A stretch of DNA of 64,000 bases, from assembly GCA_030704615.1 (NCBI GenBank), contig CM060733.1, positions 62,186,001 through 62,250,000 on the forward strand, read 5' to 3'. Source of the DNA: Takakia lepidozioides. Lineage: Eukaryota > Plantae > Bryophyta. The translations under genes and the position numbers were made by a program. Under the pieces are notes generated by a model. The model did not search any database and had not been told where the DNA came from. It saw only the letters and a program-made list of their open reading frames with translations. Every line of letters begins with the position of its first letter. Position 1 is the first letter of the stretch. This document shows, one piece after another, positions 21,746-64,000 of the stretch.

Positions 21746-22162
21746 GTCCACCAGCAATCGAAAGAATCACTCGGGACGGGAAATCTGGAACCTGAATGGG
21801 TTGCATTGTTCCGAAACAACACAATTGCGGCCAGTCTTGATGAGCACAACTTGGTTGTCTGACCGTTTTAACTAACAGTACTGGCACTTGTCAGTGCGAA
21901 CGTTCTTGTCTGCACCGAGAATACTGCTGGATCCACCCTCAGGAGAAACTGTCAGGAGATGTTATTTCGTCGCCGAATCGGCCATTATTGTCTTACTTAC
22001 TGGCTATGGAATCACACCTCCCACCTTCATGCATGTAGCTTGAAACAATACTTTCCACTTCAATGTGCGACTTCCAATCGTCGATGGACTCCGCATGGTG
22101 CCTGTGAGCCTTGGTCTGTCGCTATACTGAACCTCGCACTTGCCAACTTCGTGCGGTCTTCG

Positions 22163-36737: not shown

Positions 36738-38419
36738 TCCATGTGCCTTGCGTGGAAGCACGCTCCCACCTTGGATGATGCAGAGACACAGTTTGCATGC
36801 ATACGGGCTTGGTGGACATCGTCAGGTGCTGTAAGGAAATCAGACGAGGGAGCAATGGTCAGTTGGCTAGCATGGTGGCATTATCGTTTCCTCCAGTTCG
36901 GCGACTATATGCGGGAGGTGAGTTGCACGAATTCGGGTCCCGTTGAATATTATTCTTGGCCATATTTGTAACTTGCTTGTAACCTCAACATGTGCTTGTG
37001 CAGGAAATGTGTCTCGACTCCGACACCGACATGCCCACGACAAACATGGCCGAATCAGTGCACTCTTCCTGGCGTGCCTCCTCTGCGGCACATCTGGTGG
37101 ACATCCTCACTGCCACAACGGAGGACATTGTGAGGTCAATTATGCAGCAATGCAGGTACAACGAGTTCTTGAAAGGGAAACAGTGGGGCTTGGGGCCGGA
37201 CAGGCAGGAAATGCTGATGCGGACTGCCTCTAGATCAAAGAATCCTCGGAAGTGGGCAGCGGCCTTGCGAGAGGGCCTTCGGGACACGCCATTGCTGCGA
37301 AGAGGCCAACATTTGGAAGGAGATGTTCATACCCGTCCAGTGAGACGAAGACTTGACGAGGCACCTGGCGGAGAAGAGGATTCATGGCGAGCTGACAAGA
37401 ATATTCGCACGCTCCCTCGTGGTCCGGTGATGTTGCCCGAGGAGGTCTCGTCGAGCACCGCAAGTCCTGCACGTTCAAGATCGCCATCTCCTTCGAGCAC
37501 AGGGCGCGTGCCCCGGCAACATAACGAGCCATCTGTAGTAAAGCAGTACAACATTCCCATTGAGACAAGAGTGTCGGAGTCACAGTGGAGAATTGCGAGG
37601 ACATTGCCGGCATTTCGAGGGAAGTGCTGCGCCATCCGGGTGGATACGAGAGCACGATGTGGTGAGATGATTCGGAGGAACCCACACGGTGCTGTACCTG
37701 CACCTTGTTTCAACGGCAGATTTTTGACTCCCACATTTGCTCACGCCACAACGCAGACATTTTGGTTCTGTAGGCACGACATAATGACCTGTGTATTTGG
37801 CAAGCCCAAGTACGGGATTCAGGGAATGCCGGAGCCTCCGGGCGTCTGGCCTGTTGCACCGGGTTGCAGCCTCTCTCAGAATGAGGCGGATGCTCTATCT
37901 GCAGCAGGATTTCGAATGGTGCAACGCACAGACATCCCGGCCCACGCATTTCCGGTTCCTCAGACCCAGCCATTGCAGACTGCTCGGTCCAGTAGAGACG
38001 GATTGGACAATTCTGCACATCCCACAATGCGATTTGGAAGAGTGAAGAGACGACACCCTCCCAACAAGTTGAATGAGACTCGGATTGCCAATGCTCTTGG
38101 GATGGCTTGCACTATTCAGAGCTCCGTGGACGTACCCCCACCCGGCCTTGGGCGTGTGTATCGGATGGCAACGGCCGGCTCGGCTGTACGCGACGATGTA
38201 TACACAATTACGATTGGAGTGGAGCCGACTTGCAATTGTACGGACTTCTCGTTGATGGAAGCAAAGAAGGGTTTGAAGTATTATCCGTGCAAGCATCTGT
38301 ATTACATTTACCTGAAGAGGTTGAGGATGAACGTGACTATTGATGACTTTATTCATGCACCGGCGTTGAGCATGAACGAGCTGCACAAACTCCTCCTTAG
38401 GGATTCCAGAAATCATTGA
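36738..38419 (+). pseudogene. C-terminal part of subfamily B transposase (catalytic Glu, SWIM)
   Basis: TTNMAESVHSSW and CNCTDF...CKHLYY in ORF 36992..38419. Intron position as in A. The N-terminus is deleted. Confidence 0.88.
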
Positions 38420-38820: not shown

Positions 38821-39198
38821 TGTCATGAGGGGACCTATAGCCGCGGAATTCGGCACCATTTTTCGCTAGAGAGACCTATTACCGCGAAATACGTCGCCGT
38901 TTTTTCAGGTTACGGACCCTATTACCGTGAAATTCGGCGCCATATTTGCACATGTCGCTGGGAATTGGCATGAGCGGAAGACGAAATATCATGAGCACAA
39001 CTGTCAAAACTGCAAGTTTCCCTTCAAGGGGCCGAATAATATATTTTTTTTTCCTGACACATTGCATTAAAGTATTGTTTTTTATTGTTTTTTATTTTCG
39101 AAATTTGTACTTCTGCTCATGAAAACCGATTGTCTTACTACTCCGCTCATGCCGCTCATGCCGCTCATGCTGCTCATGCTCATGAAATAGCAAACCTC

Positions 39199-40058
39199 TC
39201 TTCCTACTGGTAGTCTCTTCTCCAAAATGACCTCCAGCTACTCCTTTATGAACTTCCTCCAAAACTTTTACTTCATGGTGGTACAAGCATCGTTTAAGTA
39301 CTCCATCAGGTCCTAGCTTATACATTCTTCCCCCTACCATAGTATAAGGTAAAGCCTTGATAGCGATTCTCTTCCTCTGCTCCTTACCATAACTAGGTGG
39401 GCACTGACCATGAGTAAGGTAGTATCTGATTGGCCACTGCCAATCTAACCATTCATCCGCACTTCCCTGCACCTCCATTGCAAATAAACTCGCATCAGGT
39501 AATTGGTCGTCTACTCCTGTGGCGGGCTCTCCTGTTGTTATGTGTGACAAATGATCTGCCACAAGATGCAAATGGCCAGGCTTGTAAACAACTTCGAACT
39601 CAAACTCGTGCAAGATTATTAACCACCTTGCTATCCTTCCACTTATCAAAGGTTTGTTCACCAGACATATCAGAGCCTGGTGATCCACATAAAACATAAA
39701 CTTTCTTCCCAATAGGTAATGCCTGAATTTCTTGACTGCATAAATCATTGCTAGTGCTTCTCTTTCAGTTGTGCTATAGTTCCTTTCAGCACTGTTCATC
39801 AACCTGCTAGCATAGTACACAGGTGACTCTATATTTCCTGTAACATTTTGGGCTATCACCGCTCCCAACGCCTCCCCTACCTTCACCATCCTCGGTTCCT
39901 CTTCAGTTCCCACATTCACTTCTCTCACCTGCTCATCAGCTGTGATTGTCCAACCAGTCACCACTTCATCCTGTAAACTCACAGTGGCTGGTTCCTCTAG
40001 GATTTCCATTTCTCCCTCTTTTTTTTCATAGAAATGTGGTGGGTAACTGCTTGTTTCA
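39199..40058 (-). pseudogene. pol: Gypsy pol fragment: post-protease linker fused to RNase H and integrase start (RT deleted)
   Basis: EPRMVKVG|EALGAVIAQ junction, then NYSTTEREALA, VDHQAL, ADHLS and GGHFG. Confidence 0.9.
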
Positions 40059-40909
40059 GAGGTTTACTATTTCATGAGCAGAAACCATGAGCCATGAGCC
40101 ATGAGCCGCATGAGCCGCATGAGCGGTGAGCCGAAGTCTAAGATACGCGGATTTCATGAGCGGACTCCTCCAAATTTGGAAATGCGGTAGATTAAACAAG
40201 TATTAAAATAATAGTTTTTTATTTGACCTTGCCGTTTTTGGACGTTCCAGATCATGTAATGCGGCGAAGATATGTCGTCAGTAACAAGTCCGCTCATGGT
40301 TTTTTAGATCCGCTCATGGAAATAAGTGACCGTGCAACGGGAAATCCAGTATACCACTGCAAAAGAACGTCGCATACTGGCCTGTATAGAGTATTCTGCG
40401 GTTTTACATGCCTTAACATTGGAATGAAGCTGACCCTTTTGCCGCGATTGAACCAATGGAGTCTGCACCAATACAGTCTGCAGTACTTCACAATTCTGTC
40501 TTCTTCGGGTATTCGGCGGGAAAGGTTTGCAACTGAACTGGGAAATAAGGTGCCGCATTAGGGTTCGCACGTGCGAAATTTCGGAGCGGTTTGGTGTTGG
40601 CGAAGGCCGCCTCTACCAGTACCTACGACGATACTTGGAAATGCGGCGCCGCATTTCCTTGTCGGAGGTCGAATGAGGAAATCAAGTTTTCGGAAAGCAG
40701 AAAAACATGAACCCTCCAACATACAAAAATACATGCACGTGGAAACAAGTGAACGATATAGTAATATCTTAGTTCGAGCAAAACAGGTTACTGGTAGGCA
40801 AGACATATGTCGGACCTTTCTGTGGCCAGAGTTTGAGGTACTGGCAGCAGTACAGTTCTACTATCCGAAAAGGATGGGCGTACCATTGTATTGGGACCGC
40901 AAGCCAAGC

Positions 40910-43900
40910 TCACTGGTCCCCTGGATCCATATTCAGAAGAGTGTGAACCTCCTGGGGGCTCAACCCTGGTGCATGTATGAAGTGATGAGTTGTGGAATTA
41001 CAACGGAGTCTCTTTAGGTACACGTAGTACAAATGCTTGCAAGGGCAGTATGATGCCCCCTTGTTCGCCATGATCTGGAAGTCGGTGCAATTGCAGGTGG
41101 GTAATTCTGAAATGGTGATGGTGTACACCTCATTGCGAACAGCTGAGCCCGCCGTGGCCATCTGATACACACGCCCAATCCTGGTGGGGGCACTTCAGTC
41201 GAGCTCTGGATTGTACAGTTCATCCGAAGTGCATTCCCCATCCTTGTCTCGTTCACTTTTGAGGGAGGTTGCCGCCTCTTCGGTTTCCCCAACGGTGTGT
41301 AGGATGCTTAGAGCTGTCGTGTCCCATTGTGCTTGCTCTCACAGGGGTCGGTGGTGGAGGCTGTGGAAGCGGAAATGGTTGTCTGGGGACGTCAGTGCGC
41401 TGCACCATCCGAAATCCTGCGGCGGTAAGGGCGTCGGCCTCAACCTGACTCAGATCGCAGCCTGGTTCCACCGGCCACACCGGGGGAGCCTCTGGCATTG
41501 TTTGTATGCCGTACTTGGGCTTTCCATACACGCAAGTCATAATGTCGTGCCTGCAGAACCAGAACTGGGTGGTTGTCGCCTCCGCAAACTTTGCATGGAC
41601 AAATCTTCCTGTAAAAGTAGGAGCAGGGACAGCCCCATCTGGATTCCTCCTTATCATCTCTAAACAACGTTGTCGTGTATCCACACGAATTGCGGAACAC
41701 CTTCCTCGAAACGACGGCTTTGTGCGAGCAATTCTCCACTGTGATGCAGACACAGTCGTCTCCACAATGGCTTGGCCATACTGCATAGCAGCGGGCGGAA
41801 TCTGGGGCAAGGGAGCGGTGGGAATTTCTCGCACGAAATCCCCGGTTGAAGGCGACGGCGATCTGGAATTTCTTGGGCTTCCATTGCTGGAAGACACATT
41901 GTGCGGCAACATGACGGGACCTCGAGGTGCTGTCCGAATGTTCCTGTCGGATCTCCAGGAATCCTCTTCGCACCCAGGTTCCTCTTCAATCCTCCGCCTG
42001 ACAGGGCGAGTCCGGACGTCCCCCTCTAGGTGTTCACCTCTGCGGTGCAGAGGCGTCCCTTTGATCTTCTCTCGCAATGATGTCGCCCATTTCAGTGGAT
42101 TCTTGGACCTCGAAGCTGTTCGTACCAACAATTCCTCCCTGTCCGGCCCAAAGCCCCATTGTTTGCCGCTCAGGAACTTGTAGTACGTGGCTTGCTGCAT
42201 GATTGCTCTGTCGATGTCCTTCGTTGTGGCCGTCACTACGTCCACCAGATGTGCGGCAGAAGACGCTCGCCAGGACGAGTGGACCGATTCTGCCATATTC
42301 GTGTTCGGCATGTCCGTGTCGGAATCCAAGCACCGCTCCTAGAAGGACACAAACAATGGTGAGGGACCAATCAAAATGTGCGTAACAGAAAGACAAATGA
42401 ACGAAAATGACAGCAGCCTACCTCCCGCATGTACTGTCCGAACTGTCGATACCGAAAATGCCACCACCCCAACCAGCTGTGCAATGCTCCCAGATTGGTT
42501 GTCTCCACTGCACCTGACGTGTTCCACCAAGCCTCGATGATAGCAAACTTAACCTCCGCGTCATCAAATGTGGGTGCATCCTTCCACGCCGTACAAAGGA
42601 CACGGTGTTCAGCCTGGAATGAGCTAGCAACAAATTTGGTAGTGTAGTGGGATAGACTCTGCATCCAATGGAATCCACAAGATCTCTCTTTCCCTTCCAT
42701 TGGAACATTGGGGTCCTCACCGTACACACGCCGCACCGCTGCCCAGTTGGCCTGAGCGTTGTCTGCCATGAATCCCCTGAAATTGGGCTCTGGCAATCCC
42801 GCCCTTGCCATCTGCTCGTTTATGCCCTCCCACAGATGCATCTCGGACTGTGTGTCCTCCCCTTTCATCTCGCAGATTGCAATCGTCATGAGCCTCTTGG
42901 AGTGATAGTCATAAACATGCGCACCCATAGTCACCCACTGATGGTTTGTAATTCGCTTGATGTGATCAAACATCACCCAAGCATTCGACAAGTTTCCAGT
43001 TGTCATGCGAGTGACCAAGTCGACTCCACTCCCAGGCCCACACGTCGACATTTTGAAAATGTAACAACGATCGGATTCGCTGCCTTGCCCTAGAAACCTG
43101 CTACCTTGGATGTAGTCATATCCAGTCATTCGTTTCACCTCCAGGATTGAGTACATGTCCGACCCCCTGCCGAACTCCTGCTTGCAAGATACAATGTGAT
43201 TCCGCACATTCGGACTACAAACGTGCGAGACGGACTCCAAGAGGTCACGCATCTCGTCTTCGGTCAAGGGCTCTCGGTCGGAACCATCTTCAGACATGAT
43301 TTTGCCAAGAGCAATCTTGTGGGCTGCCTTCAGCTGAATCTGCTTTGGTCTGGCTCCGGGGCTCAATTTCACCTCCTCTTTTATGATGTCGTGTGCTTCC
43401 TGCACAGCCTCCCGCATGTTGCCTCTCGCCAAGGGGTGGCAGTGGACCCCAACGTGTATGCAAGCTCTAGTCAAGTCCGGGAGCAAATGGATTACGTAAT
43501 ATTGCTTGGCTCTGCACATGGACATGCACGTCGGTGGTTCTTTGCAATGTGCACACTTGAAAGAACCCGCAGGAGCTTGGCTGGAGACAATGAGTGGATG
43601 ATGCGTTGTGCCAGTCCAATCCGTCTCGTTTCTCCGCCCTCCTTTGGAGAGAAAGTGGAAGCAGGTGGGATTGAGGCACCTCAGCTTCCCCGCACAGAGG
43701 ACATATCGTACACGAACACCATCAGCAATTTTCGTGCTACTGGTCTTTGTCACACACCAGGGGTGTCCGTCATGCTTTCGATCCATGTTTGTTAACATCC
43801 CGGAGGCTTTGTTTGACGAAGAAACAGGTGGAAACTCGAAGATGACATTGCCATCGACTTTGGGAGGCAGAAACGTTACCTTTCTGACTGGGAATTTGGC

Positions 43901-44503
43901 ATAGTCGAGAGCAGCCAGCTCGGAGCGAGAACCATTGAGGTGATGTTGTCGTAGGAGCTGCACAATGGACCGGGTTGGAGTTATGCTCGAGGGCACATGC
44001 GTAGCACCTACAGAGACATCCATGCCGGATTTGAACGACCGTGTGGAGGACATGGGTACCTCAATGCAATGATCTTCCTTGTCGGAAATGTCGAATACGT
44101 CCACACGAGAAGCTATGGAGGGTCTTGACGGTCCAGGTCGGGAATGATTATCGTTGCATACCTCTCTGTTGGCAGTGGCCGCCTGTCGGTTTCTGGATGG
44201 TGTGGGCAGCGACTGATTCGGAAAGGGAATGGGCATTCCCACAGCTCGGTACAGGATGGTGTCTGATGGGGGTACGTGCCATTCGATTCCGCAACCTCCG
44301 TCGTTACCTAGCACGACAATGGTCTCGTCAACCTGTCCAGGAACATCCTTCCTTTCTTCTTCCAAATAAACTGTGCCCGGTTTGAGCTTGAATTTGGAAC
44401 AAAGGTAAGTTTCAGTCACTCTGCAAAGTCCTCCCTCGTTTGGGATCCAGGCTCTCCCAAGTTGCGGAGGACAGCAAACTATAGCGTAGGAATTCGGAGC
44501 CAT
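40910..44503 (-). CDS. Mutator-like transposase of A2 (exon 1 intact, two frameshifts late in exon 2)
   Basis: ORFs 42371..44707, 41253..42329 and 40910..41170, with the same motifs as A. Confidence 0.88.
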
Positions 44504-44919
44504 CGAAGACCGCACGAAGTTGGCAAGTGCGAGGTTCAGTATAGCGACAGACCAAGGCTCACAGGCACCATGCGGAGTCCATCGACGATTGGAAGTCGCA
44601 CATTGAAGTGGAAAGTATTGTTTCAAGCTACATGCATGAAGGTGGGAGGTGTGATTCCATAGCCAGTAAGTTAGACAATGATGCCCGATTCGGCGATGAA
44701 ATAACATCTCCTGACAGTTTCTCCTGAGGGTGGATCCAGCAGTATTCTCGGTGCAGACATGAACGTTCGCACTGACAAGTGCCAGTACTGTTAGTTAAAA
44801 CGGTCAGACAACCAAGTTGTGCTCATCAAGACTGGCCGCAATTGTGTTGTTTCGGAACAATGCAACCCATTCAGGTTCCAGATTTCCCGTCCCGAGTGAT
44901 TCTTTCGATTGCTGGTGGA

Positions 44920-46435
44920 CGGAAATACGGCGCCGCATTTCCGTATTGCATCTTGGTCATGCACCAGAGCGACGGAAATGCGGCACCGAGTTTCCGTCCG
45001 GGGGAAACCTTTATACTCTCCAGAACGGAAATGCTGTAACGCATTTCCATCCAGCAAGCACGGTATGTGAAGGTGGTACGGAAATGCGGTAACGCATTTC
45101 CATCCAGCAAGCACGGTATGTGAAGGTGGAACGGAAATGCGGTACCGCATTTCCGTTCTGATTGAGAATCATGAACAAATGGAACAGAAATGCGGCACCG
45201 CATTTCCGTCCGAGTGGCACTTTCCGACATTCCAGAACGGAAATGCGGCACCGCATATCCGCCCGGGTGAGACCTTAACACTCTCCAGAACGGAAATGCG
45301 GTAACGTATTTCCATCCAAAAAGCACGGTATGTGAAGGTGGAATGGAAATGCGGTACCGCATTTCCGTTCTGATTGAGAATTATGAACAACGGGAACAGA
45401 AATGCGGCACCGCATTTCCGTCCGAGTCGCACTTTCCGACATTCCAGAACGAAAATGCGGCGCCGCATTTCCATTTTGTATCTGATGCATGGAGCCGAGT
45501 GCAATTCCAAACGCTTGAGACAGCGCAATTCCGACCGGTTGAGACATTCATACTATCCAGAACGGAAATGCGGTGACGCATTTCCGTTCTGACTGAAAAT
45601 CGTGAACCATCGGAACTGAAATGCGGCAGCGCATTTCCATCCGAGTCGCACCTCCCAACATTCCAGAACGCAAATGCGGCACCGCATTTCCGTTCTGATG
45701 AAAAATCGTGAAACATCGGAACTGAAATGCGGTACCGCATTTCCGTCGGAGTCGCACCTTCCGACATTCCAAAACGGAAATGCGGCGCCGCATTACTGTT
45801 TTGTATGTGAGGCATGGAGCTGTGGAACGAAAATGCGGCACCGCATTTCCGCCAGGGTCAGACCTTAATACTCTACAGAACGGAAATGCGGTACCGCATT
45901 TCCGTTCTGACTGAAAATCGTGAACAACGGGAACAGAAATTCGGCTCCGCATTTCCGTCCGAGTCGCACCTTCCGACATTCTAGAACGGAAATGCGGCGC
46001 CGCATTTCCGTTTTGTATACGAGGCCTGGAGCTGTGGGACGGAAATGTGGTGCCGCATTTCCATCCATGTGAGACCTTCAAACTTTCCAGACAGGAAATG
46101 CGGCACCGCATTTCTGTTCAGGTGAGACCTCTATACTTTCCCGAACGGAAATGTGGAACGGCATTTCGGTTCATCAACTGCGGTATGTGAAGGGGGAACG
46201 GAAATGCGGTACCATATTTTGATTCAGATTGAAAATCATGAACCACGGGAACTGAAATGTTGTGCCGCATTTCCGTCCGAATCGCACCTTTCGACATTCC
46301 TGAACGGAAATGCGGCGCCGCATTTCCCTTTTGTATCGCATACATGGAGCTGTGGGACGGAAATGCGGCACCGTATTTCCGTTCAACAACTAAGGTATGT
46401 GAAGGTGGAACTGAAATGCGGTGCCGCATTTTCTT
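44920..46435. repeat. 53-bp palindrome array of A2 (one extra unit near 45030-45110)
   Basis: Reverse complement of 20286-21745. Confidence 0.92.
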
Positions 46436-46789
46436 CCAACAAGTATGTGATTCAGCGGATGAGAGCGACGCAGACAGGGAGGAAGACGACCCAACGGAGG
46501 TGAGATGGACAGTTCCGCAAGGGGAAGATGGGATTTTTCGAAAGCCTGGCCAACGAGCAGTCCGCTGGAGATGAGAAAGGCACTGAGGGGGTGGAGGCGG
46601 AGCAGGACAGTCTAGAACAGGATGAGGATTCGGATGATTTTCAAGATTAATAGAATTTTAATGAAGTCTCTGTAAATGTAGATTCTCTTCCAGAGTATAT
46701 AAAGGAAAATCTCCCCGACATTCGTCACCCCTCTCCAGTGTGCATTCCAGCCACAAAATCGCCCAAACCACGACGCTCCCAAAATCAGA

Positions 46790-47560
46790 AATGGGGCACC
46801 GCATTTCCAAAATTTTGGCAACTCTAAAAACCTCTTTTGGAAATGCAGCACCGCATTTCCAAAACAGGGGAGGGACTAAATTTTCCATTTCAATGTTGGC
46901 ATAGTAAAAAGTAATCGGCCGATTGGAAATGCGGTGCCGCATTTCCAAAATTTCCTTTGTCCACACGCCAGTTTTGGCTTCTCCCGCTCATTGCATGGAT
47001 GCCACCACGCTTACAGAGGTCGAACAAGGAGGTCGAACAAGGAGGTCGAGATGGCGGAATTGGAAATGCGGTACCGCATTTCCATATTGGGGATGGTCGT
47101 TGTTTGAACTGCAGGCCCATCAGCAAAAATTGGCACCGCATTCCATTGTCAAAAAAAAGTCGATGACGGACATGGAAATGCGGCGCCGCATTTCCAGAAC
47201 GGACATCGCAATTTGTCCATTTGCAGACCCTCTCACGGAAATGCGGTAACGCATTCCATCGAGCTGGTCGGAAATGGGTGCACTTTTCGAAGTGTTGGAC
47301 GGAAATGCGGCACCGCATTCCCTTGTCTAAAAAGAAGTTTCCATTGCCAAGCTGGAAATGCGTCGCCGCATTTGCAATGCCAACCTCGTTGTCTGTCCAA
47401 TTTATAGACCCGTGTTGGTATTTCGTGTACCTGGACGGAAATGATGCACCGCATTCCATTGTCCGACACTGAAATGCGGTTCATACATTTCCATGTCGGC
47501 ACGGAAATGCGGCACCGCATTTCCAATGTCCGACACGGAAATGCGGTGCCGCATTTCGAT
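46790..47560. repeat. Loose A-type palindrome array of A2
   Basis: Reverse complement of 13793-14530. Confidence 0.85.
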
Positions 47561-47813
47561 GCCGACATGGCGTTACTCTGGTATATTCTTGACACATGAC
47601 TCTCATACTGGTTACTCTGGTATATTCATCCGGACAGACAAATTGTAGAAATGAGACATCAAATTGTAAACAGTGGGCCAATTCCGACAGTTATTCAACA
47701 GAATGAAACACAATCATACAGAAGTGAGGTACGATGGGTTTATTGATCGGACACGATGTCTCACATTTACCAACTGCAGACAAAACTAAGCCCTTCCTCC
47801 TTCTACATGGGCT

Positions 47814-48468
47814 TCACCAAGTGGACGGAACTTCGATACCCCTCAAAACAAGCTCATCACTGCTGCGGCACCTCGAGGTAAACTGCAATTCGGTCGTTCT
47901 GCTGCCCTTGCTGGAGCCGACGACAATGTCATGTCCATCAATGATACCACCATCATACATTGACAAGGTCACTGTGGGCCTCATGTGCCCGTGCGATTCG
48001 TCTTTGCAACTCAGCCGAATGTCTCCATACACTGGAAGAGCGGAGTGATCTGCACGTATATAGTTTTCCCCGGTGCCGTCCTCCCTGGTCCACTGGCAGC
48101 AGTTCCAGCGCCAAAGCGAGGCCGTGCGTGATCTGTCCGGCATCCCTTTCCAGCTTGGTATATCGAGGTCAACAATTTTCAGGACCCACGGACCGCATTG
48201 ACCCTCGCCCTCACCTCGCTCAAAGCGGTAATAGCCCTCCAGATACTCCATTGCGCGCAAAGACTCTTGCTTGATTCCAGCAGCGTCTGTGAAAACAGAG
48301 AGCCAGACAATGATGTCTCCTGATTCTGGTTTGAACATAGCATAATCGTGGCCATGATAAGGGCAGTCGGCTGGATTTCGGCGGCACGGCATCCTTGAAA
48401 AAGAGTAGCGGAGTACGCTCAATGACAGCAGCTCCCGGATGGAGGAGGAGCAGCGCGGTGGCTGGAAA
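47814..48468 (-). CDS. Cargo paralog 2 of A2 (open, upstream region lost)
   Basis: MPCRRNPADCPYHGHDYAMF...EVPSTW with no stop. Confidence 0.7.
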
Positions 48469-52356: not shown

Positions 52357-52856
52357 NNNNNNNNNNNNNNNNNNNNNNNNNNNNNNNNNNNNNNNNNNNN
52401 NNNNNNNNNNNNNNNNNNNNNNNNNNNNNNNNNNNNNNNNNNNNNNNNNNNNNNNNNNNNNNNNNNNNNNNNNNNNNNNNNNNNNNNNNNNNNNNNNNNN
52501 NNNNNNNNNNNNNNNNNNNNNNNNNNNNNNNNNNNNNNNNNNNNNNNNNNNNNNNNNNNNNNNNNNNNNNNNNNNNNNNNNNNNNNNNNNNNNNNNNNNN
52601 NNNNNNNNNNNNNNNNNNNNNNNNNNNNNNNNNNNNNNNNNNNNNNNNNNNNNNNNNNNNNNNNNNNNNNNNNNNNNNNNNNNNNNNNNNNNNNNNNNNN
52701 NNNNNNNNNNNNNNNNNNNNNNNNNNNNNNNNNNNNNNNNNNNNNNNNNNNNNNNNNNNNNNNNNNNNNNNNNNNNNNNNNNNNNNNNNNNNNNNNNNNN
52801 NNNNNNNNNNNNNNNNNNNNNNNNNNNNNNNNNNNNNNNNNNNNNNNNNNNNNNNN
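52357..52856. other. Assembly gap (500 N)
   Basis: Run of N. Confidence 1.
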
Positions 52857-52898: not shown

Positions 52899-53725
52899 GG
52901 AAATGCGGCACCGCATTTCCGTTCTGATGAAATATCCTGAAACATCGGAACTGAAATGCGGTACCGCATTTCCGTCGGAGTCGCACCTTCCGACATTCCA
53001 AAACGGAAATGCGGCGCCGCATTTCCGTTTTGTATGTGAGGCATGGAGCTGTGGAACGAAAATGCGGCACAGCATTTCCGCCAGCGTCAGACGTTAATAC
53101 TCTACAGAACGGAAATGCGGTACTGCATTTCCGTTCTGACTGAAAATCGTGCGCAACGGGAACAGAAATGCGGCACCGCATTTCCGTCCGAGTCGCACCT
53201 TCCGACATTCTAGAACGGAAATGCGGCGCCGCATTTCCGTTTTGTATATGGGGCCTGGAGCTGTGCTACGGAAATGTGTTGCCGCATTTCCATCCATGTG
53301 AGACCTTCAAACTTTCCAGACCGGAAATGCGGCACCGCATTTCTGTCCAGGTGAGACCTCTATACTTTCCCGAACGGAAATGTGGCACGACATTTCCATT
53401 CATCAACTAACGTATGTGAAGGTGGAACGGAAATGCGGTATCGCATTTCCGTTCACATTGAAAATCATGAAGCACGGGAACTGAAATGTTGTGCCTCATT
53501 CCCGTCCGAATCGCACCTTTCGACATTCCAGAACGGAAATGCGGCGCCGCATTTCCCTTTTGAATCTCATACATGGAGCTGTGGGACGGAAATGCGGCAC
53601 CGTATTTCCGTTCAACAACTAAGGTATGTGAAGGTGGAACGGAAATGCGGTGCCGCATTTTCTTCCAACAAGTACGGATGTGTAGCTTCGTGATGGTACT
53701 TAACGGAAATGCGGCGCCGCATTCG
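52899..53725. repeat. 53-bp palindrome array of A3
   Basis: Same units as 20286-21050. Confidence 0.9.
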
Positions 53726-54162
53726 CATTTTCGCTCCAACTCATCAGACGCTGGGACGGAAATGCCTTGAAATGTGAACACGTGGAGCAACGGAATTGCT
53801 GCACATGTCGGCACTCTATCTGACTGAAGGGGCATGAGGCGGCGCGGCCTGACCGTTGGATAATGATGTTTGTTTTTCGGACGGCAGGCGTACCCTGAAC
53901 GATTCGAATTTCGTAATGACGCAAAGTCCACGAGGAGACACTTTCGTCCAACCCTTTCGAACCCAAGTGGTGCATCACCGCCGTTTCATCTACTTTTGTC
54001 GTGTCTCCTCAGTCACCCCTCTCGCGCCCTTTCCATCTGCACTCTTTGCCCCTTTTCCCTCTCTCTGTTCTTCTTATGCTTGAACCTGAGAGGGGGGGAG
54101 TTCGTGCACCATACAGGAGACCTCGTCGCAAGCTCCGGAAATTATACTTCGGACGTAGGCCA

Positions 54163-57100
54163 ATGCCGAAGGGGAGGAAGCAGATGCGTCTACAGGAGGA
54201 GATTGCCATCTCCGAGCAGCAGGCCACTCAGGCAACCCAGCCACCAGTGAGAGCTCCATGCGATCGGGCTGCGCGCAGCTGATCGAGCACCGAACCCCCC
54301 ATTTTGCTTCTGTAATTCTTAGACTGAATCCTAGGAGACTTGAATGCAGAACATGTTTGCATGCCTAACAGGAAAGGTGGACGTGCTGGAGGGATCGCAG
54401 GAATCCGAAGAGCCGCAGGAAGAGTCTCGAGGAGCTAGCTGCAGCACGTACACCCACCCGATCCCCGAGCGCGGGTATTCCTGCTGGGCCTAGCCCTGTG
54501 CGATTCAAAGACGCGTCTTCGAAGGGCAAGTTCAAAGCCCCAGAGATCGACTCGCGTTCTTCGGTCATGGAGAATCGCCAGCAGGGGTCGGGCCCTTCTC
54601 CAGCAAAGTCGAAGAATAAGCAGCCCGTCCCTCTACTGGCTTCTGAACCGGCTCAGGCCGATTCACCCCCCCCAACGCGAATGAAGCAGCAGGGTAGAAG
54701 ACAGATTCAATTGCAGCAGACACCTTCACCTGCAAGGATGAGGAAGCAGAAGGCAATCAGGGCGACGGGCGAACAATCTCCCGCAAAACCGCTTCCACGA
54801 GCTGAAGCTCAGTTCCTGGAGGATTTCCCGCCTGCAGATGTTGGGGCCGACTCTGCTGCAGCGAAGGCAATGGGATCGACCGTTGATCTCGATTTGGTAC
54901 CGGAGGAGGGTGCTGCCGCTCAACGTTCGCAGCAAGACCTCACCACCGATGAGCAAGCAGGCCCGGAGGAGGCCTCTGCAATGGCAGAATTGCCCGCAGA
55001 CAGGCCCCAGAGTGCAGCTCCAGTTGAGGATGCTCCAGCTGCTCAGCCACTACCGGCACCTACAGACATGTCTCCGGAGGATTTCAAAAGTGCAGCCGAT
55101 AAAATGTTGGAGGAGACACACAGTAGCATTGGCAGAGTTCTGGGCAGCAGGGTATTCCAGCGGACTCTTCGAATCCCACTCTGTCGCATGGTCTCCCTTC
55201 CCATCGTCAGGCAGGCCCTTCCCGGAGATGTGGATAAGCTCAAGTTCGCATTTCGAGAAGGGTACCGTCTGGGATCGGCAGCGTTTTACGTTTCCATTGA
55301 GAATGAGGACGGCGAAACTCGTGGACCCACTGCCGATGAATTGTCAACGTGGGATACCCACTGGCACACTCGCAACCACGAATTCGAGGCGACGCTGAAG
55401 GGTGATCCAGACTTCGGCCATATGTTGGGTAAAATGTTCTTTGTGTGGGACGGGAATCACCGACTTCTCGCCTGGTGGGAGTACATCAAGCAGAACCATG
55501 CCAAGCACATTGGCTGGCATTACATGGTGGAGTGTGTCATCCTGAAGGTGAAGGCGGCAGACTCCTCCCTGCTCAAGAATGCCATGGCGGACCTCAACTC
55601 GTAAGATACTCATACCCTCCCTAGCACGTTCGAAATGCGGTGCCGCATTTCGGTTTCCATTCTGGTTTGTTTTCGTGCTTCCGTGTACTGAACTGGAGTG
55701 TGTGCCTTGCAGGGTCACTGAGAATGCGTACGTGCATACCCACATGGCACATATGCTGTACAGGGTGAGGAAAACTGGTCTCACTGATCCGCAGATGTTT
55801 GCGGAAATGCTGGAGCCCGAGCTCATTCAGAAAGCCGTTGCAAAAACAGACCGGACATGGTATCGTCTCACTATGGATGGAATGGTGGAGGTGATATACG
55901 AAGTAAGTCGTCCTCCCATTTCCCTCTGCTCATCCTCCCTCAATTTTCAGTAATGTTTCCACATGAATCGAATGTAACGCTTCTGCATGTTTTTGTTGGC
56001 AGTCAAACATCAAGCTGGATTTGGCCCATGCCAAACGCTTCTTTGTGGAAAGTGAGGGGCAGGTCAAAACGTTGCAGTCATTGACTGAGCACTTGAAAGA
56101 AGCCGGTGTCAAGTCCAGAACCAAATACAAGTCAAAGCTTGTGAAGCTGGTGGCAATTGCAGATCCGGCACTTGGAAAGGACTTCATCCCCGAGATTGCA
56201 AAACACTATTCTCGGGCCATGCAGCCGACCATGCAATTGGAGAAACTGCATCACCTCTCAACGGCATGTGTGGAGGCGAAAGAGAAGGTGAGGTTTCAAT
56301 GCACTGAAGTTCCTTCCTAGCAATAGCCACTCTCTTCCAGCTCCTGACATTGGATCGGAAATGGCAGACACGGTGGCTGTCGATCTGGAATGCATCCGAG
56401 AGCATAAGGACAATGTGGTCTTTTCCACTCAAAGTTTCCGACCCTGCAGTGGATGTGTGGCTCAACCGTATGACTTGGTGGTTCCAGGTAATTCAAGATA
56501 CTTCCCCAGATTTGCTTTTCTGACATGAATTCCCTGAACTGCTACGTGACAATGCATTTGGGAATCGCAGGTAATGTCGAATGCGAAGGAGCAAGTCGTA
56601 ATGCACACAAATTCGTTCGGCTTGTACGTCAAATGGGATGGAACACAGACATTGGAAGACTACGTGACACGTTTCAGATGTGCGTACAAGGACAACCTTT
56701 TCACCAGAGAGCTACAGACAGCAAGAAGGAGCGTGGAGTTTACACATCAGGAGGGAGCGGGGAAAGCTGCAATGCGAATTGTTTACAGGTGAAGCACAGC
56801 TGCCCTTGTATGCGAAGCCTGGTTACGAGGTTTGTCTCGGAAATGCGGCACCGCATTCGCATTTTATGTTTTTGGTGGCACTCTGCGAGTAGGTTGGTCT
56901 CAACTTTTGCTCACGCATGCTGACTGCCTTGCAGGTATATGAAATACGTGCTCCTTCAGACAGGGGCCCTGGCTCAAGAGCCCCCGTTCTTCATGGCTTG
57001 GACCGTGGCGGGCCCAAGCTGTGTCTACACACCCGAGATGCAGAAACAATGGCATCCCGCGCATCTCGTTGGATGCCCGTGGTACCTGGACATGTCTGGC

Positions 57101-59287
57101 GGTATTGTTGACGAGTCTGAGAAAGATCTGCACGCCTTGGCAGAAGAGAAGAGAAAGGAAAGACGTGTCCCTGCTTGGCCAAAGTCGGCAAAGGAATCTG
57201 CTGCTCTGGAAGAATCCAGAAAGGCAGCTGAGATGGCACAAAAGACGGTGGATGCAGCTGTGCAGGCCCAACAGAAGGGGTCGAAGAAGAGGACTCGCCA
57301 GCAAGGAGCAGCTGTTGTGACACCCGCCAAAACGAAGAAGCAGAAACAGCCTGTTCAGGAAGAGGGTGAGGAAGAGGACTCCGATGGAGACTTTGCAACC
57401 AGCCCACCCCCCCAAACGCAGGCTGCCTCCCCTGTGCCCACCGTTGTCACGAGAGGCACGAGAACTGGCTCGGCAAAGAAGGCACTCTTCAACCCCCCAA
57501 GGGGGCACCCTTTCGAGCCGGTGGAAATGAAGAGGCCGAAAGTGGCTCCCGAAACAGTAGTCCAGTGTGTAAATGAGAGTTTCTTGGCGGCTTTGGATGG
57601 ACGGGCAGCCAAGTTGGCATACATGAAGACCATGGAGGGTCTGAAGGGCAGAGCACTGAAGAAGGCGACTGCCGAAGAGCCTTCCGACACCCCAGGATTT
57701 CAGAATATGGTCTCGTTCTTTGAGAGGGTGTGTGCAGACAAGGATTGTAGGAGGGGCGGAAATGCCACCGAGTGGTCTTGCGATATGATCATCTTGGATA
57801 TTCCGGACGGAGAGCCTGTGGAAGGACTCCAAGCTTTGCCATCTTGGAACAGGTACTCGGAGGACTTTTGGAAGAAAGGATTCGGGCTTGCCCGCATGGT
57901 GTTGGACGACAGAGGCTGTGTGGTTGTCCTGGCGAGCAGAGGAAAAAACACTCAGACAGGAATTGCGAAGTGGACCCGCAAGAGCGCCGTCCCGATTCTG
58001 AAAAAGAAGTGGACGTGCATCAACACACTGGGCCTTCGGTCGGAAGGGAAGAAGGTGATTACGACACTGGCACTCGTCCATTCATTTGCTTGGGTGTTTT
58101 CAAATGCGGTGCCGCATTCGGTTTCTAATCGTTTTCCCCCTGTGTATGCAGACGAAGCAGTTCGATGCATACTGCTTTGTGAAGGAGAACTCCACCTTTG
58201 CTTTCCGGAAGGAGGGAGGAAAGGTTGACCCGAACTGCGACCCACTCGATTACGACGTTCTGTTCAACAACATTCCCAAGGAACTTCTCCCTCATAGCCT
58301 CACTTCAACGGAACCCCTGCGGTACTCACGGACTCGGAGCCCTGCCTTCATTCAGACAATTATGGAGACATGCACAGACGTGGAGGGCACAGTGCTCGAC
58401 CTCATCTATGGGACAGGTATGCAGAATCTTGATCTATGCTGTTCTGCAAATTCTCGTTAGGATGTAGTTCGCAACATCTGAAGCGCCATGTGGTAATGTG
58501 TGGATGGCATTGTAACAGGTGCCTCAATGTGGGCTGGGCGGTTTTCCGACCGGCACCTCTTTGCCTACGAGGAGGATTCATCCGTGTGGGGATCCCATCT
58601 GGAAGGGCTGCAACGGAATGTTAAGGCTCCCGACAGAGCGGAAGTCTCCTCGGATTCGTCGGAGTCCGAGGAAGACACAGTGGACATTGATGCGGAGGAA
58701 ACCCGGAATACGAGTGAGTGCAAACATTGTAAGTTTGCAAAGCCTTCTGGGTCATTTATGTCAAACGAATTTCCCGACTGTGGTTCTCATTAGTCTCGTT
58801 GATGATTGTCATGTGCAGGATTGCAGGGTCCGAGTCGAAACATGTAGGGCCTACACTTCCTGCCAGGAAGAATGTCCCGTTCTTTGCGAGGGCCGACTTC
58901 ATGACGAGCCCGGTGAGGGACTACTCCCTTCCTAGTTATGCAGCTAAACTCGCAAATACAGCGATTAGAAGAAGTGAGAATCCCAGTAAAGTAGAGCAGA
59001 TTTTGGAGAGGGCTAGGGAGGACAGAAGGATAAGGAAAGAGTTGGCAGCAGCTCAGATAGGTAGACGGGTACGAAAGTACATATGTGATTCAGCGGATGA
59101 GAGCGACGCAGACAGGGAGGAAGACGACCCAACGGAGGTGAGATGGACAGTTCCGCAAGGGGAAGATGGGATTTTTGAAAGCCTGGCCATCGAGCAGTCC
59201 GCTGGAGATGAGAAAGGCACTGAGGGGGTGGAGGCGGAGCAGGACAGTCTAGAACAGGATGAGGATTCGGATGATTTTCAAGATTAA
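54163..59287 (+). CDS. Multi-exon ParB/Srx-like + beta-class MTase-like gene of A3 (roughly 1,400 aa by estimate)
   Basis: DGNHRLLA at ~55449-55472, DMIILDIPDG at 57782-57811, VLDLIYGTG/ASMWAGRFSDRHLFAYEED across intron 58417-58518. Another intron at 58055-58151. The start is approximate. Confidence 0.78.
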
Positions 59288-59424
59288 TAGAATTTTAATG
59301 AAGTCTCTGTAAATGTAAATTCTCTTCCAGAGTATATAAAGGAAATTTTGCCAGACATTCGTGACCCCTCTCCAGTGTGCATTCCAGCCACACAATCGCC
59401 CAACCACGACGCTCCCAAAATCAG

Positions 59425-60125
59425 AAATGGGGCACCGCATTTCCAAAATTTTGGCAACTCTAAGAACCTCTTTTGGAAATGCGGCACCGCATTTCCAAAA
59501 CAAGGGAGGGACTAAATTTTCCATTTCAATGTTGGCATAGTAAAAAGTAATCGGCCGATTGGAAATGCGGTGCCGCATTTCCAAAATTTCCTTTGTCCAC
59601 GCGCCAGTTTTGGCCTCTCCCGCTCATTGCATGGATGCCACCACGCTTACAGAGGTCGAACAAGGAGGTCGAACAAGGAGGTCGAGATGGCGGAATTGAA
59701 AATGCGGTGCCGCATTTCAGTATTGGGGATGGTCGTTGTTCGAACTGCAGGCCCATCAGCAAAAATTGGCACCGCATTCCATTGTAAAAAAAAGTCGATG
59801 ACGGACATGGAAATGCGGCGCCGCATTTCCAGAACGGACATTGCAATTTGTCCATTTGCAGACCCTCTCACGGAAATGCGGTAACGCATTCCATCGCGCC
59901 GGTCGGAAATGTCACACTTTTCGAAGTGTTGTACGGAAATGCGGCACCGCATTCCCTTGTCCAAAAAGAAGTTTCCATTGCCAAGCTGGAAATGCGTCGC
60001 CGCATTTGCAATGCCAACCTCGTTTTCTGTCCAATTTATAGACCCGTGTTGGTATTTCGTGTACCTGGACGGAAATAATGCACCGCATTTCCTTGTCCCA
60101 CATGGAAATGCGGTGCCGCATTTCG
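59425..60125. repeat. Loose A-type palindrome array of A3
   Basis: Reverse complement of 13793-14530. Confidence 0.85.
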
Positions 60126-60380
60126 ATGCCGACATGGCGTTACTCTGGTATATTCTTGACACATGACTCACATACCGGTTACTCTGCTATATTCATCCGG
60201 ACAGACACATTGTAGAAATGAGACATCAAATTGTAAACAGTGGGCCAATTCCGAGAGTTATTCAACAGAATGAAACACAATCATAAAGAAGTGAGGTACG
60301 ATGGGTTTATTGATCGGACACGATGTCTCACATTTACTAACTGCAGACAAAACTAAGCCCTTCCTCCTTCTACATGGGCT

Positions 60381-61082
60381 TCACCAAGTCGACGGAACTT
60401 CGATACCCCTCAAAACAAGCTCATCACTGCTGCGGCACCTCGAGGTAAACTGCAATTCGGTCGTTCTGCTGCCCTTGCTGGAGCCGACGACAATGTCATG
60501 TCCATCAATGATACCACCATCATACATTGACAATGTCACTGTGGGCCTCATGTGCCCGTGCGATTCGTCTTCGCAACTCAGCCGAATGTCTCCATACACT
60601 GGAAGAGCGGAGTGATCTGCACGTATATAGTTTTCCCCGGTGCCGTCCTCCCTGGTCCACTGGCAGCAGTTCCAGCGCCAAAGCGAGGCCGTGCGTGATC
60701 TGTCCGGCATCCCTTTCCAGCTTGGTATATCGAGGTCAACAATTTTCAGGACCCACGGACCGCATTGACCCTCGCCCTCACCTCGCTCAAAGCGGTAATA
60801 GCCCTCCAGATACTCCATTGCGCGCAAAGACTCTTGCTTGATTCCAGCAGCGTCTGTGAAAACAGAGAGCCAGACAATGATGTCTCCTGATTCTGGTTTG
60901 AACATAGCATAATCGTGGCCATGATAAGGGCAGTCGGCTGGATTTCGGCGGCACGGCATCCTTGAAAAAGAGTAGCGGAGTACGCTCAATGACAGCAGCT
61001 CCCGGATGGAGGAGGTGCAGCGCGGTGGCTGGAAAAAGTTCAAGCTAACGCTGCAATTCCTCACAAACACTCCAGGGCACAT
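60381..61082 (-). CDS. Cargo paralog 2, intact
   Basis: 233-aa open ORF. Confidence 0.75.
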   Translation of the reverse strand: MCPGVFVRNCSVSLNFFQPPRCTSSIRELLSLSVLRYSFSRMPCRRNPADCPYHGHDYAMFKPESGDIIVWLSVFTDAAGIKQESLRAMEYLEGYYRFERGEGEGQCGPWVLKIVDLDIPSWKGMPDRSRTASLWRWNCCQWTREDGTGENYIRADHSALPVYGDIRLSCEDESHGHMRPTVTLSMYDGGIIDGHDIVVGSSKGSRTTELQFTSRCRSSDELVLRGIEVPSTW

Positions 61083-61343
61083 TTAAATTTCCCCCCTACA
61101 AGATCCTGGACCGATGAAGATTGGCTGCTTCATGAATGTAGCCGTTTCAGTTTCCTACCCTGCAATGCAAACTATGGGCACTCACTGCCAGGTGGGCCGA
61201 TAGCCACTGGACACGACGAAGTCCATCCCCTCTTCGATGTAAATGCGGCGCCGAATTTCCATCCGGGGGGATGGACTTCGGTGGCAGATCTCAAACTATA
61301 ACTTCTTGATGAGAAAGATGTATGGGTTCATCCACCTCCGTCG

Positions 61344-62054
61344 GTGGGTACGTGGGACCCAGATGCTCCATTATTGGAGGCCGGACTGCTCTTCCGCTTC
61401 GCATCATTTCCAAAATCTAAGGGCTTCGTAGCTGTCCGCAAGGTCATTGTCATCTGCATCCAAGTCGTCCTCAGGTCCTCCTTTGCAAGGATGCCGTGCT
61501 TCCGGAACCGGGACGACTGCCCATTTGGAGGCATCGATTATGCAATGTATTCGGCCACATCAGGAGACATTGTTATCTGGTACACAGATTACACAGAAGA
61601 TACTGGTTCGATTGTGGAAACATTGGTGGCTTTTGAGTATATCGTAGGCCACTACGCCTTCGAGCGGGGTGACGATCTTGGTCTGAGGAGTCCGTGGCTC
61701 CTGCGCATCCTTGATTCCGATTTTCCCAGCTACGACGGTCACCCATGCAGAAGAAGGCGCACTGCTATGCTGTTGCGGTGGCACTGCTGCCACTGGACGT
61801 GGGTGGACTCCATCGGAGAGACCTATTCTCCTGAAGGAGTGCGCTCCTCTTCTCCATTGTATGGGGACATTCGCATTGGTGTGGACGACGAAAACGTGAA
61901 GATTTCCATATTCGATGGTGGTATGATTGAAGGGCAGGACATTGTGGTGAACATCAGTAGGGGCGGTACAACGGCTGCAATAGACTTTACCTGGAGGAGC
62001 CCCATGACTCATGAGCTAGTTCTGAGAGCAGTCGAAGTCCCATTGACAACGTGA
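61344..62054 (+). CDS. Cargo paralog 1, intact
   Basis: 236-aa open ORF, homologous to 11847..12683. Confidence 0.75.
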   Translation: MGTWDPDAPLLEAGLLFRFASFPKSKGFVAVRKVIVICIQVVLRSSFARMPCFRNRDDCPFGGIDYAMYSATSGDIVIWYTDYTEDTGSIVETLVAFEYIVGHYAFERGDDLGLRSPWLLRILDSDFPSYDGHPCRRRRTAMLLRWHCCHWTWVDSIGETYSPEGVRSSSPLYGDIRIGVDDENVKISIFDGGMIEGQDIVVNISRGGTTAAIDFTWRSPMTHELVLRAVEVPLTT

Positions 62055-62517
62055 CTTGTATTCAGTAGGCACATGGCTCAAGATTTGATGGCACAATCAG
62101 CACAGTAGACGTGCTTCAAATGCAATTCATGTGGATCAATAAAAACCTCATTGTGCCCTCTTTTTATTCTATTCTGTGTCCATCGTTCCGAGAATGCGTC
62201 ATTGCTCATTTCGTTTGGGATTGGGAGTGGGGGTGGATTTCGCAAGTGGCTGGTAGGCTGAAATGGGCCCCCATTGTACAGAGCAGTACCACCCTACCAT
62301 TCGCGAAACATTGCCTTTCAATATATAATTCTAAATAACATTGCCGAACCTCCTTCATCGGGAGGTCCTTCTCCCCCTATGACCGTGGCACCCTAAACCC
62401 TATTCCCGCGGACACTCATTTCCGGAAAATAGTGCTGCTCATGTTTTTTTCCACACTTACGACTCTGCTCATGGCTCATGCCGCTCATGGCTCATGGCTC
62501 ATGAAATAGTAGCCCCC

Positions 62518-64000
62518 GATTCGGGCCCAGACCTCTCATTCTGCATCTGGCCAAACATAACTCCAATTTATGCAAGTCCTCATTCTTAGAGCTGTACACA
62601 CTGAAATCATCCAAGAACACCTGCATGAAATCATCCAGATACTCATGAAAAGATTCACTTATCACTCTCTGAAAGGTTGCTGGTGCATTACAAAGTCCAA
62701 AGGGCATGACTTTGTATGCATAAGCACCCCAGTCTGTGATGAAAGCTGTCTTTCCCTGGTCTTCTTCTGCCACTTGCACTTGATTATAACCACTGAAGCC
62801 ATCCATGAATGAGTACATCTCATGGCCTGCCACAGTGTTCAATACTGCTTCTGTGAATGGTAATCCTTCTTCGTGCAAGCATTCAACTTCTTATAGATCA
62901 CACAAACTCTTAGTTTACTATTCTTCTTGGGAACTATCACAATGGGTGACAACCAAGTTGTATACTCTATTGGGTATATAAACTTAGCCTCAGCCAACTT
63001 CTTGATCTCTTCTCCAACCTTTTGTGCATAGTTGGGATTCATTCTGTACCTAGCCTGCTTGATTGGTACTGACCCTTGTTCCAGTTCAATCTTATGCTGA
63101 CAGATCTCAGGTGGTATCCCTTTTAGATCCTCGTAGCTCCAAGCAAATACATCTCTGTATTTGATGAACAAACTCTTAGCTTCTTCAAAGAATTCTGGCT
63201 CCAAATCAGCTCCTACCTTCACCATCCTCGGTTCCTCTTTAGTTCCCACATTCACTTCCCTCACTTGCTCATCAGCTTTGATTGTCCAACCAGTCACCAC
63301 TTCATCCTTTAAACTCACAGTGGCTGGTTCCTCTAGGATTTCCATTTCTCCTTCTTTTTCTTCATAGAAATGTGATGGGTAACTGCTGGTTTCCTCATCA
63401 ATCGGTGTTGTTGACACTACACCACAGCAGATACCCCTTAAACAACTTAGGCCTTCCAGCCGCATCTCTGCAACCTGCTCCCACTCTGGGTGTGCAACAA
63501 ACAGGGTAGCTTCCTGCTCCTCATCCAGTCCTCCTCTCCAGTCATACTCTCTGACTCCTCGAGGTCTTCTCGTAGCAGGTAATCTACTAGATTTCTTAGT
63601 GGTAATTTGTATCTCGTGTATCCCATCATGCACAGTTAGTAACTGAGAATTCCAGTCATGGAATACCCTGGCCTGTTTCAGCCACGGACGTCCCAACAAT
63701 AAGGAGTAAGCTTCCATGACTTCATCCATTTTTAACACAGTTACTGTGATCATAAAGATCATATTTTGAATCTGTATCTTAACTCCTCTTATCAATCCCA
63801 ATGGCTGTACACTTCTTTGATCTGCCATTGTTACTGTAAATGGGGCTGGCTTCATGTTACTTAGACCAAGCTTCTGCCTTTATTGGTCTGTCATGATGTT
63901 CACTCTAGAGCCTCCATCTATCAGTACATCAGTTAGTTCTGTGCTTCCAATTCTCAATTGGATTACTGGCATAGAATTATCAAAGTCCATGACTGTTTCT
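62518..64000 (-). pseudogene. pol: Gypsy pol: protease and reverse transcriptase, cut by A3
   Basis: LLGRPWL, WLSPIVIVPKK, DGFSGYNQ, MPFGLCNAPATFQR and VFLDDF (Athila-like FxDD). One frameshift near 62860. Confidence 0.92.

Follow-up and report, generated by a model that had tools for sequence, protein, structure and literature searches.

The accessory protein of the Ectocarpus transposon Sola1-1_Ec32 combines ParB-like and DNA methyltransferase domains within 1,104 aa, and has been proposed to bind and modify its own element (PMC12477816). According to the Bostrychia genome paper, red-algal Plavaka elements carry PAG3, in which a ParB-like domain is joined to a 2-oxoglutarate (2OG) oxygenase and which has adjacent inverted-repeat arrays, and PAG2, which joins a PF01555 methylase to a SET domain (bioRxiv 10.1101/2025.02.11.637652). 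The ParB-like domain of PAG3 was recognized by remote detection only (best HHpred match 7BNR, E 0.29), and cargo of the Plavaka type moves between transposon superfamilies, Mutator included (bioRxiv 10.1101/2025.02.11.637652). Proteins that recognize the DNA of their own element are known from very few eukaryotic transposons; per the algal-transposon literature cited here, the VANDAL anti-silencing factor is the only known case. Here, we analyzed a 64,000-nucleotide stretch of the genome of the bryophyte Takakia lepidozioides (GCA_030704615.1, contig CM060733.1, forward-strand positions 62,186,001 to 62,250,000; hereafter the window, from whose first letter all coordinates are counted). In it, a gene at 54567-59287 (+) is predicted to encode a protein with a ParB/sulfiredoxin (Srx)-fold domain and a methylase-like domain. 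The gene lies in one copy (A3) of a repeated element and has a counterpart in a second copy (A). With a probability of roughly 0.6, we consider that the locus as a whole is best explained as encoding a ParB/Srx-methylase-like transposon accessory protein that acts in self-recognition. The identity of the protein (its fold, the fusion, and its place as transposon cargo) is highly probable, and the mechanism of self-recognition is tentative, at somewhat less than even odds.

The design itself has already been described or predicted in transposons of brown and red algae, and the locus reported here is a land-plant, Mutator-borne member. As in Sola1-1, the carrier appears to be a giant DNA transposon, and its accessory gene, which is of similar length, lies on the strand opposite the transposase and encodes a ParB-like domain at the N-terminus and a domain of the N4/N6 methylase type at the C-terminus. 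In contrast to Sola1-1, the carrier looks Mutator-like, the named relatives are from land plants, and the catalytic tetrad is degenerate; the two proteins are likened by description, not by sequence. With Plavaka the locus shares a ParB-like domain that is found by remote methods only, as well as tandem inverted-repeat arrays that adjoin the ParB-bearing gene. In Plavaka, however, the partner of the ParB-like domain is an oxygenase and a separate gene encodes the methylase, whereas here both parts are in one protein.

A predicted ParB/sulfiredoxin-fold domain

The core of the domain is the motif FFVWDGNHRLLAW, encoded at 55437-55475 (+) in copy A3, in which a beta-strand leads into a GxxR-type box that opens a helix (from the translation, a pattern search, the alignment of relatives and an AlphaFold2 (AF2) model). 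It lies in an open reading frame (ORF) at 54498-55604 (+), whose translation includes ...GKMFFVWDGNHRLLAWWEY.... A degenerate pattern back-translated from the motif has exactly two matches in the window, at 55437-55462 (+) and, as its counterpart in copy A, at 18490-18515 (-), with none expected (100 shuffles). Comparison of the window with itself showed that 52901-64000 (+) is an inverted duplicate of 21047-10772 (-), with ~97.5% identity over more than 10 kb. A preliminary description of the window had reported the DGNHR motif in copies A (~18480-18510) and A3, and the pattern search and self-comparison confirm both occurrences at the right coordinates.

An exhaustive HMMER search with the whole domain (55158-55600, +; the end of exon 1, model residues ~198-345) recovered 479 proteins at E ≤ 1e-3, 153 of them at E ≤ 1e-10, with best identities of 45-48%. 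From these relatives and the conserved residues, a chance-string origin of the motif was ruled out. An alignment of 45 domain sequences (A1) was used as input for AF2 and for conservation counts. The motif is the most conserved block of the domain: G99, N100, H101, and R102 are each present in at least 90% of the aligned sequences, a level also reached by R18, the Arg after strand 1. The conserved blocks are IPLCRL..VRP, GYR, FYVS, W..W...N..F, and, strongest of all, VWDGNHRL.AW. Between the FYVS strand and the motif strand, both the alignment and the model have a helical insertion of ~45 residues with conserved tryptophans.

The AF2 model obtained from this alignment has a predicted local distance difference test score (pLDDT) of 89.5 and a predicted template modeling score (pTM) of 0.82. 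In it, the strand at residues 94-98 reads FFVWD and the helix at 100-113 begins with NHR (NHRLLAW...). The top 50 Foldseek matches in the PDB are all members of the ParB/Srx superfamily (sulfiredoxin, Noc, ParB, KorB, PadC, Atu1540, SerK, and SbnI), with a best E of 8e-3 at a probability of ~1.0, a probability also given for Noc and ParB. When the model was compared by VIA-align with 48,161 representative chains, 14 had Z ≥ 2 and the top 12 again belong to this superfamily, led by KorB (Z 8.1), SerK (7.4), PadC (7.3), and Srx (7.2). Atu1540, SbnI, pNOB8 ParB-N, Spo0J, SspE, Osa, and BrxU are also on this list, SspE and BrxU at a Z of only ~3. The shape search of the ESM Atlas led to ParB_N, HTH_ParB, and KorB clusters and to a phage cluster with ParB_N+N6_N4_Mtase, and the BFVD search to phage ParB/sulfiredoxin proteins, two of which are annotated as methylases. 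Thus, all meaningful structural matches in four libraries (PDB-Foldseek, VIA-align, ESM Atlas, and BFVD) are to the ParB/Srx superfamily. The domain has the features of that superfamily, namely a compact alpha/beta fold, a strand with a G-x-x-R box at the helix N-terminus, and an Arg after strand 1. The ParB-like fold that had been suspected around DGNHR was borne out by the model and these matches, and we regard the motif as the predicted strand-plus-GxxR-box core of a ParB/sulfiredoxin-fold domain, an assignment that is well supported by modeling.

Several results weigh against the explanation that we prefer for the locus. The preliminary description had proposed a profile search against ParBc (PF02195), and this was negative: Pfam ParB_N matches neither the window protein, nor 10 long relatives, nor, even at E ≤ 10, any of the 45 domain sequences. 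Run against the sequences of the PDB, the family profile picked up no ParB and gave only a spurious match to eL24. The box is DGNHR (DGNHRLLAW) in place of the GERRxRA of cytidine triphosphate (CTP)-binding ParB. Neither a helix-turn-helix (HTH) nor any other DNA-binding domain came up in the linker that follows (Pfam on exons 2-5 and an Atlas feature search of the linker). Lastly, the structural scores are middling (Foldseek E ~1e-2, Z ≤ 8.1) and identities are 7-19%; they therefore speak for a shared fold, not a shared activity. More generally, Pfam scans of the ParB exon, 11 other stretches of the accessory-gene region, and the 10 long relatives gave nothing credible, with all matches far under the cut-offs. 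Compared with the CTP clamps ParB, KorB, and Noc, the domain has the same N-domain fold, the Arg after strand 1, and the G-x-x-R box at the helix start; it differs from them in the wording of the box, the helical insertion, and the absence of a ParB_N match, and neither HTH_ParB nor a ParA partner was found here.

The sole sequence hints, all below threshold, lead to a different branch. The DndB family PF14072 matches four of the 45 members (best E 0.026) and TIGR03187 (DGQHR) matches three (best E 3.8e-4), both under their curated cut-offs and neither matching the window copy. These weak hints are consistent with the D-G-x-H-R box, which is found in DndB and Srx, and lend some support to the DndB resemblance that had been noted for it. 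On another reading, the domain could act like members of the DndB/DGQHR or DUF262 branch (SspE, BrxU/GmrSD), as an NTPase, a nuclease, or a regulator, and the palindromes described below would be unrelated to it. The presence of SspE and BrxU among the structural matches fits this reading, but the top-ranking structures are DNA clamps (KorB, Noc, and ParB), and the phosphorothioation or restriction context of that branch is absent here. We consider such an identity unlikely.

A predicted spliced gene with both parts in one frame

The accessory gene of copy A3 was modeled with nine exons (54567-55600, 55713-55902, 56003-56287, 56341-56487, 56571-56788, 56935-58054, 58152-58416, 58519-58713, and 58827-59287) on the basis of splice sites, an open frame, and colinear relatives. 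Each of the eight introns has GT...AG boundaries and a length within 53-146 nt, and one frame is open over 1,304 codons, with its sole stop at 59285. The model is sequence-derived; its start codon is uncertain, and further upstream exons are possible. Searches used one exon at a time, and natural full-length relatives took the place of the whole protein. In one annotated protein of the liverwort Riccia sorocarpa (KAL3677308, or P0153; 1,207 aa) and two of the fern Adiantum (P0142 and P0145), the ParB-like domain and the motif-IV stretch of the methylase-like part occur together. The A3 exons are colinear with P0153 and with the contigs L002 and L004, in which the exon order is the same. For example, exon 6 matches P0153 928-1043 (E 6e-12), and exon 7 is colinear with the lead-in to motif I in that protein. 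Exons 2-5 have little similarity to relatives, and the linker between the domains is poorly conserved and probably helical.

It could be argued that the ParB-like and methylase-like exons are separate genes or transcripts and that the long frame is an accident of modeling, a reading to which the low similarity of exons 2-5 and the uncertain start codon would lend themselves. Against it stand the nine pieces that remain in frame over the whole length with canonical splice sites, the independent Riccia and Adiantum annotations that join both domains, and the colinear exon order in L002 and L004. Constraint within the linker, described below, also speaks against it, and we consider two separate genes highly improbable. 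The GT-AG exons that the preliminary description had traced from the ParB-like domain to the methylase-like exon hold, its view that the two parts belong to one protein agrees with the liverwort and fern gene models, and the predicted in-frame fusion is well supported.

The counterpart in copy A (14667-20000, -) has a ParB exon at 18351-18869 with 98% amino acid identity to that of A3. Relative to A3, which is open, the exons of copy A have seven 1-base deletions and one 1-base insertion; these frameshifts are either real or assembly errors. Exons of the two copies have diverged by 1.2% and introns by 3.2% (p 1.5e-4). The ratio of non-synonymous to synonymous differences (pN/pS) is 0.41 overall (p 0.003), an estimate whose basis of only 48 substitutions counts against leaning on it heavily. 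By region, the ParB-like, linker, and methylase-like parts have pN/pS values of 0.19-0.29, with the minimum (0.19) in the linker, and the low-complexity ends of the protein, N-terminal and C-terminal alike, reach ~1 or above.

A degenerate methylase-like domain

In the C-terminal part, DIPD (57798-57809, +) occupies, in comparison with relatives, the place that catalytic motif IV (DPPY) takes in beta-class amino-methyltransferases. A stretch that resembles motif I, the S-adenosylmethionine (SAM)-binding motif (VLDLIYGTG / ASMWAG...; 58392-58545, +), follows and is split by the intron at 58417-58518. The order is motif IV (codon 913) and then motif I (~codon 1079). The similarity to known methylases is concentrated in the second of these. 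PF01555 matches the motif I region of Riccia paralogs with E of 5e-5 to 9e-6 and 23.7-26.2 bits, against a cut-off of 26.7, and the match is precomputed for four of the 26 paralogs. A profile of the methylase-like domain finds solely beta-class methylases in the PDB, with weak scores (DpnA-type, E 0.009; CcrM, E 0.013). The assignment has to be set against the lack of any Pfam match for the methylase exons of the window and against the AF2 model of the methylase-like domain of Riccia P0153 (19-row alignment), whose pLDDT of 45.5 is too low for a fold search. A word search with the motif-IV exon of the window also gave no match. Taken as a whole, the C-terminal part reads as a degenerate beta-class DNA amino-methyltransferase-like domain.

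Across the family the tetrad takes several forms: DIPD at the locus described here, and DLPT, DLPS, DLSS, DMSS, DFPI, or DVPF in relatives. The pattern (D/N/S)-P-P-(Y/F/W) is not found, and the fourth position has no conserved aromatic residue. Such variation speaks against conventional catalysis. An active DNA N6-adenine or N4-cytosine methyltransferase, targeted by the ParB-like domain to mark the DNA of its own element, is exactly what was proposed for Ectocarpus Sola1-1 (PMC12477816). It would fit the IV-then-I motif order, the GxG stretch resembling motif I, the similarity of relatives to PF01555 and to DpnA and CcrM, and an architecture that is the same as in phage ParB_N+N6_N4_Mtase fusions. 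On the other side, neither the second proline nor the base-stacking aromatic of the tetrad is conserved, likeness to real methylases does not reach outside the motif I region, and the fold model was of low confidence. Activity of this kind is quite improbable in our judgment, and we favor a methylase-like domain that would serve mainly as a DNA- or SAM-binding module.

The phage and plasmid ParB_N+N6_N4_Mtase proteins resemble the Takakia protein in domain order and in fold (an Atlas cluster with a TM score of 0.50 and a root mean square deviation of 2.4 over 90 residues, and a mycobacteriophage 'DNA methylase' in BFVD). They are unlike it in having no sequence similarity by tblastn, and the protein described here has a linker of ~550 residues, introns, and a degenerate catalytic motif. 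The preliminary description had suggested an old horizontal acquisition, for which no sequence-level support was found: a tblastn search with the domain against phage and plasmid collections was unmatched, and ParB_N matched 0 of the 45 members.

A putative Mutator-like transposon as carrier

Element A is bounded by terminal inverted repeats (TIRs) of ~50 bp, the left at 11384-11445 and the right at 26523-26606, which were identified by self-comparison and a TIR search. The same terminus recurs at ~40059 and at ~62517, and the end of A3 equivalent to the left TIR lies at ~62440-62517. Head-to-head with the accessory gene, element A has three overlapping long ORFs (21872-25752, +) that encode a putative Mutator-like transposase. 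These ORFs have no Pfam match; all of their Atlas feature neighbors are Mutator-like element (MULE)/SWIM proteins (0.81-0.87), which serves as a lead only, and the related ORF at 36983-38416 has a weak SWIM match (E 0.0037). A head-to-head pair of the same kind occurs on an unrelated metagenome contig (L001), where the transposase-like ORFs have 30-44% identity and the ParB exon 45%. From this arrangement, the gene appears to be cargo of a TIR-bounded DNA transposon of roughly 15 kb that looks Mutator-like.

That the carrier is a transposon, as the preliminary description supposed, agrees with a gene that lies within a TIR-bounded multi-copy element beside a MULE-like transposase. Its term eukaryotic domestication, on the other hand, is the wrong word for a gene that is still transposon cargo. 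A domesticated host gene was ruled out, given the multiple copies, their position inside TIRs, and the decay of some of them.

A third copy of the element (40059-48468) still has its transposase-like ORFs, the two arrays of palindromes, and its 3' end. The ParB-methylase-like gene is cleanly gone from it (the equivalent of 14872-20274), making it a natural gene-less derivative that is useful for comparison. At 33160-36725 (-) there is a copy of a diverged subfamily that extends from exon 5 to the last exon with 47-61% amino acid identity, is without the ParB exon and exons 2-4, and abuts the transposase-like ORF at 36983-38416. Exon 6 is also represented by a separate fragment at 84-1032 (-).

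Long ORFs without a Pfam match occur in the interval from the downstream palindrome cluster to the element terminus, at 61302-62051 (+), 11850-12713 (-), and 12835-13242 (+); the last of these resembles the other two in a common FSRMPC..N..DCP..G.DYAM stretch. An assembly gap of 500 N (52357-52856) adjoins the upstream palindrome array of A3, and the transposase side of A3 is therefore unassembled. Beyond the TIR, the similarity between A and A3 resumes (10772-11383 versus 63386-64000) after 869 bp that are present only in A3 (62518-63385). This shared outer flank overlaps a retrotransposon protease ORF (10584-11399) and could be due to segmental duplication or to insertion into the same retroelement family. 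Retrotransposon fragments of the Ty3/gypsy type flank the elements at 4025-5911 (+), 39095-40000 (-), and 26745-27131 (-), and comprise integrase H2C2 and rve, RNase H, and an integrase-like piece.

Palindromes around and inside the gene

The palindrome AATGCGG-YR-CCGCATT has 94 matches in the window with at most one mismatch, and none was expected. In A3, an array upstream of the gene (52902-53723) repeats the full unit ACGGAAATGCGG-YR-CCGCATTTCCGT with a 53-bp period, and a cluster of the element palindrome lies past the stop codon (59426-60122). Three of the eight introns have one site each, at 55634-55649 in intron 1, 56842-56857 in intron 5, and 58103-58118 in intron 6 (copy A sites at 18303, 17094, and 15835, respectively), and exons have none. 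Either these sites are kept within the gene body, or introns 1, 5, and 6 were born from insertions of palindromic units. Elsewhere in the window, the arrays at 29262-29887 and 30189-31029 have palindromes that depart from it at a single position, the change on one arm being matched on the other (AAATTCGG..CCGAATTT, three perfect; AAATCCGG..CCGGATTT, five perfect).

Two of the contigs, L001 and L004, which are ~45% identical in the domain, have perfect palindromes of their own. In L001 (7326-9199), the stretch immediately before the ParB exon carries seven to nine copies of ACCCTCTCGG-CG-CCGAGAGGGT. L004 has AATGGTCGG-GT-CCGACCATT eight times (4250-4702 and 8282-8537): four of the sites precede the ParB exon, and the other four, spaced with an 85-bp period, fall between that exon and the homologue of exon 6. 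The perfect palindromes differ, and the core CGG-NN-CCG is common to them and to the palindrome of the window. Thus, across three lineages, the placement of palindromes relative to the gene and the CGG-NN-CCG core are kept and the arms have changed. Constant placement and core with changing arms would look like what is expected of a cognate protein-site pair, judging by the sequences of these lineages. The arrangement also recalls ParB/parS, in that arrays of 16-26-bp palindromes, here putative sites, lie beside the gene.

A point against this reading is that the palindromes could instead serve transposase binding or structure. This is the other half of the DndB- or DUF262-kind explanation considered above, and it draws on the fact that large DNA transposons commonly carry internal repeat arrays. 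Such a role sits less easily with palindromes that hold their positions upstream, inside, and downstream of the gene in three lineages despite the change of their arms.

In the explanation that we prefer, the accessory protein would be a self-recognition module. A protein dimer may bind the family-specific palindromes (GGAAATGCGG-YR-CCGCATTTCC in the window) through the CGG-NN-CCG core and lineage-specific arms, and a nucleotide may be held, in the manner of ParB, KorB, Noc, and Srx, by the Arg of VRP together with the G-N-H-R box. The complex, spread over the divergent promoter region and the gene body, would either keep the element expressed or aid assembly of the transposition complex. A bolder version, which we consider rather doubtful, is a eukaryotic counterpart of ParB-parS: the ParB/Srx-pseudo-methylase protein as a nucleotide-gated dimeric clamp that would read the core plus the lineage arms and give each lineage a private 'self' label, for escape from silencing or for transposition-complex assembly.

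Distribution and significance

Named relatives of the protein come solely from one liverwort and two ferns and show, as far as sequence similarity can tell, that the family is present in land plants too. In full-text literature searches, no description of genes of this type from land plants turned up. In UniRef, the Riccia sorocarpa proteins P0151, P0153, and P0154 and others are labeled 'Trimethylguanosine synthase' (several), 'Profilin', or 'Plant heme peroxidase' (one); automatic mislabeling or chimeric gene models are the probable source of these names for transposon proteins. Neither domain is caught by standard profiles, so that genes of this kind are labeled 'hypothetical' or mislabeled, which is relevant to annotation. 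The comparison of three lineages leads to a concrete site model with a fixed CGG-NN-CCG core and changing arms. If the reading is true, transposons would have in a ParB/Srx and methylase-like protein, surrounded by its private palindromes, a second answer to self-recognition, one of bacterial style.

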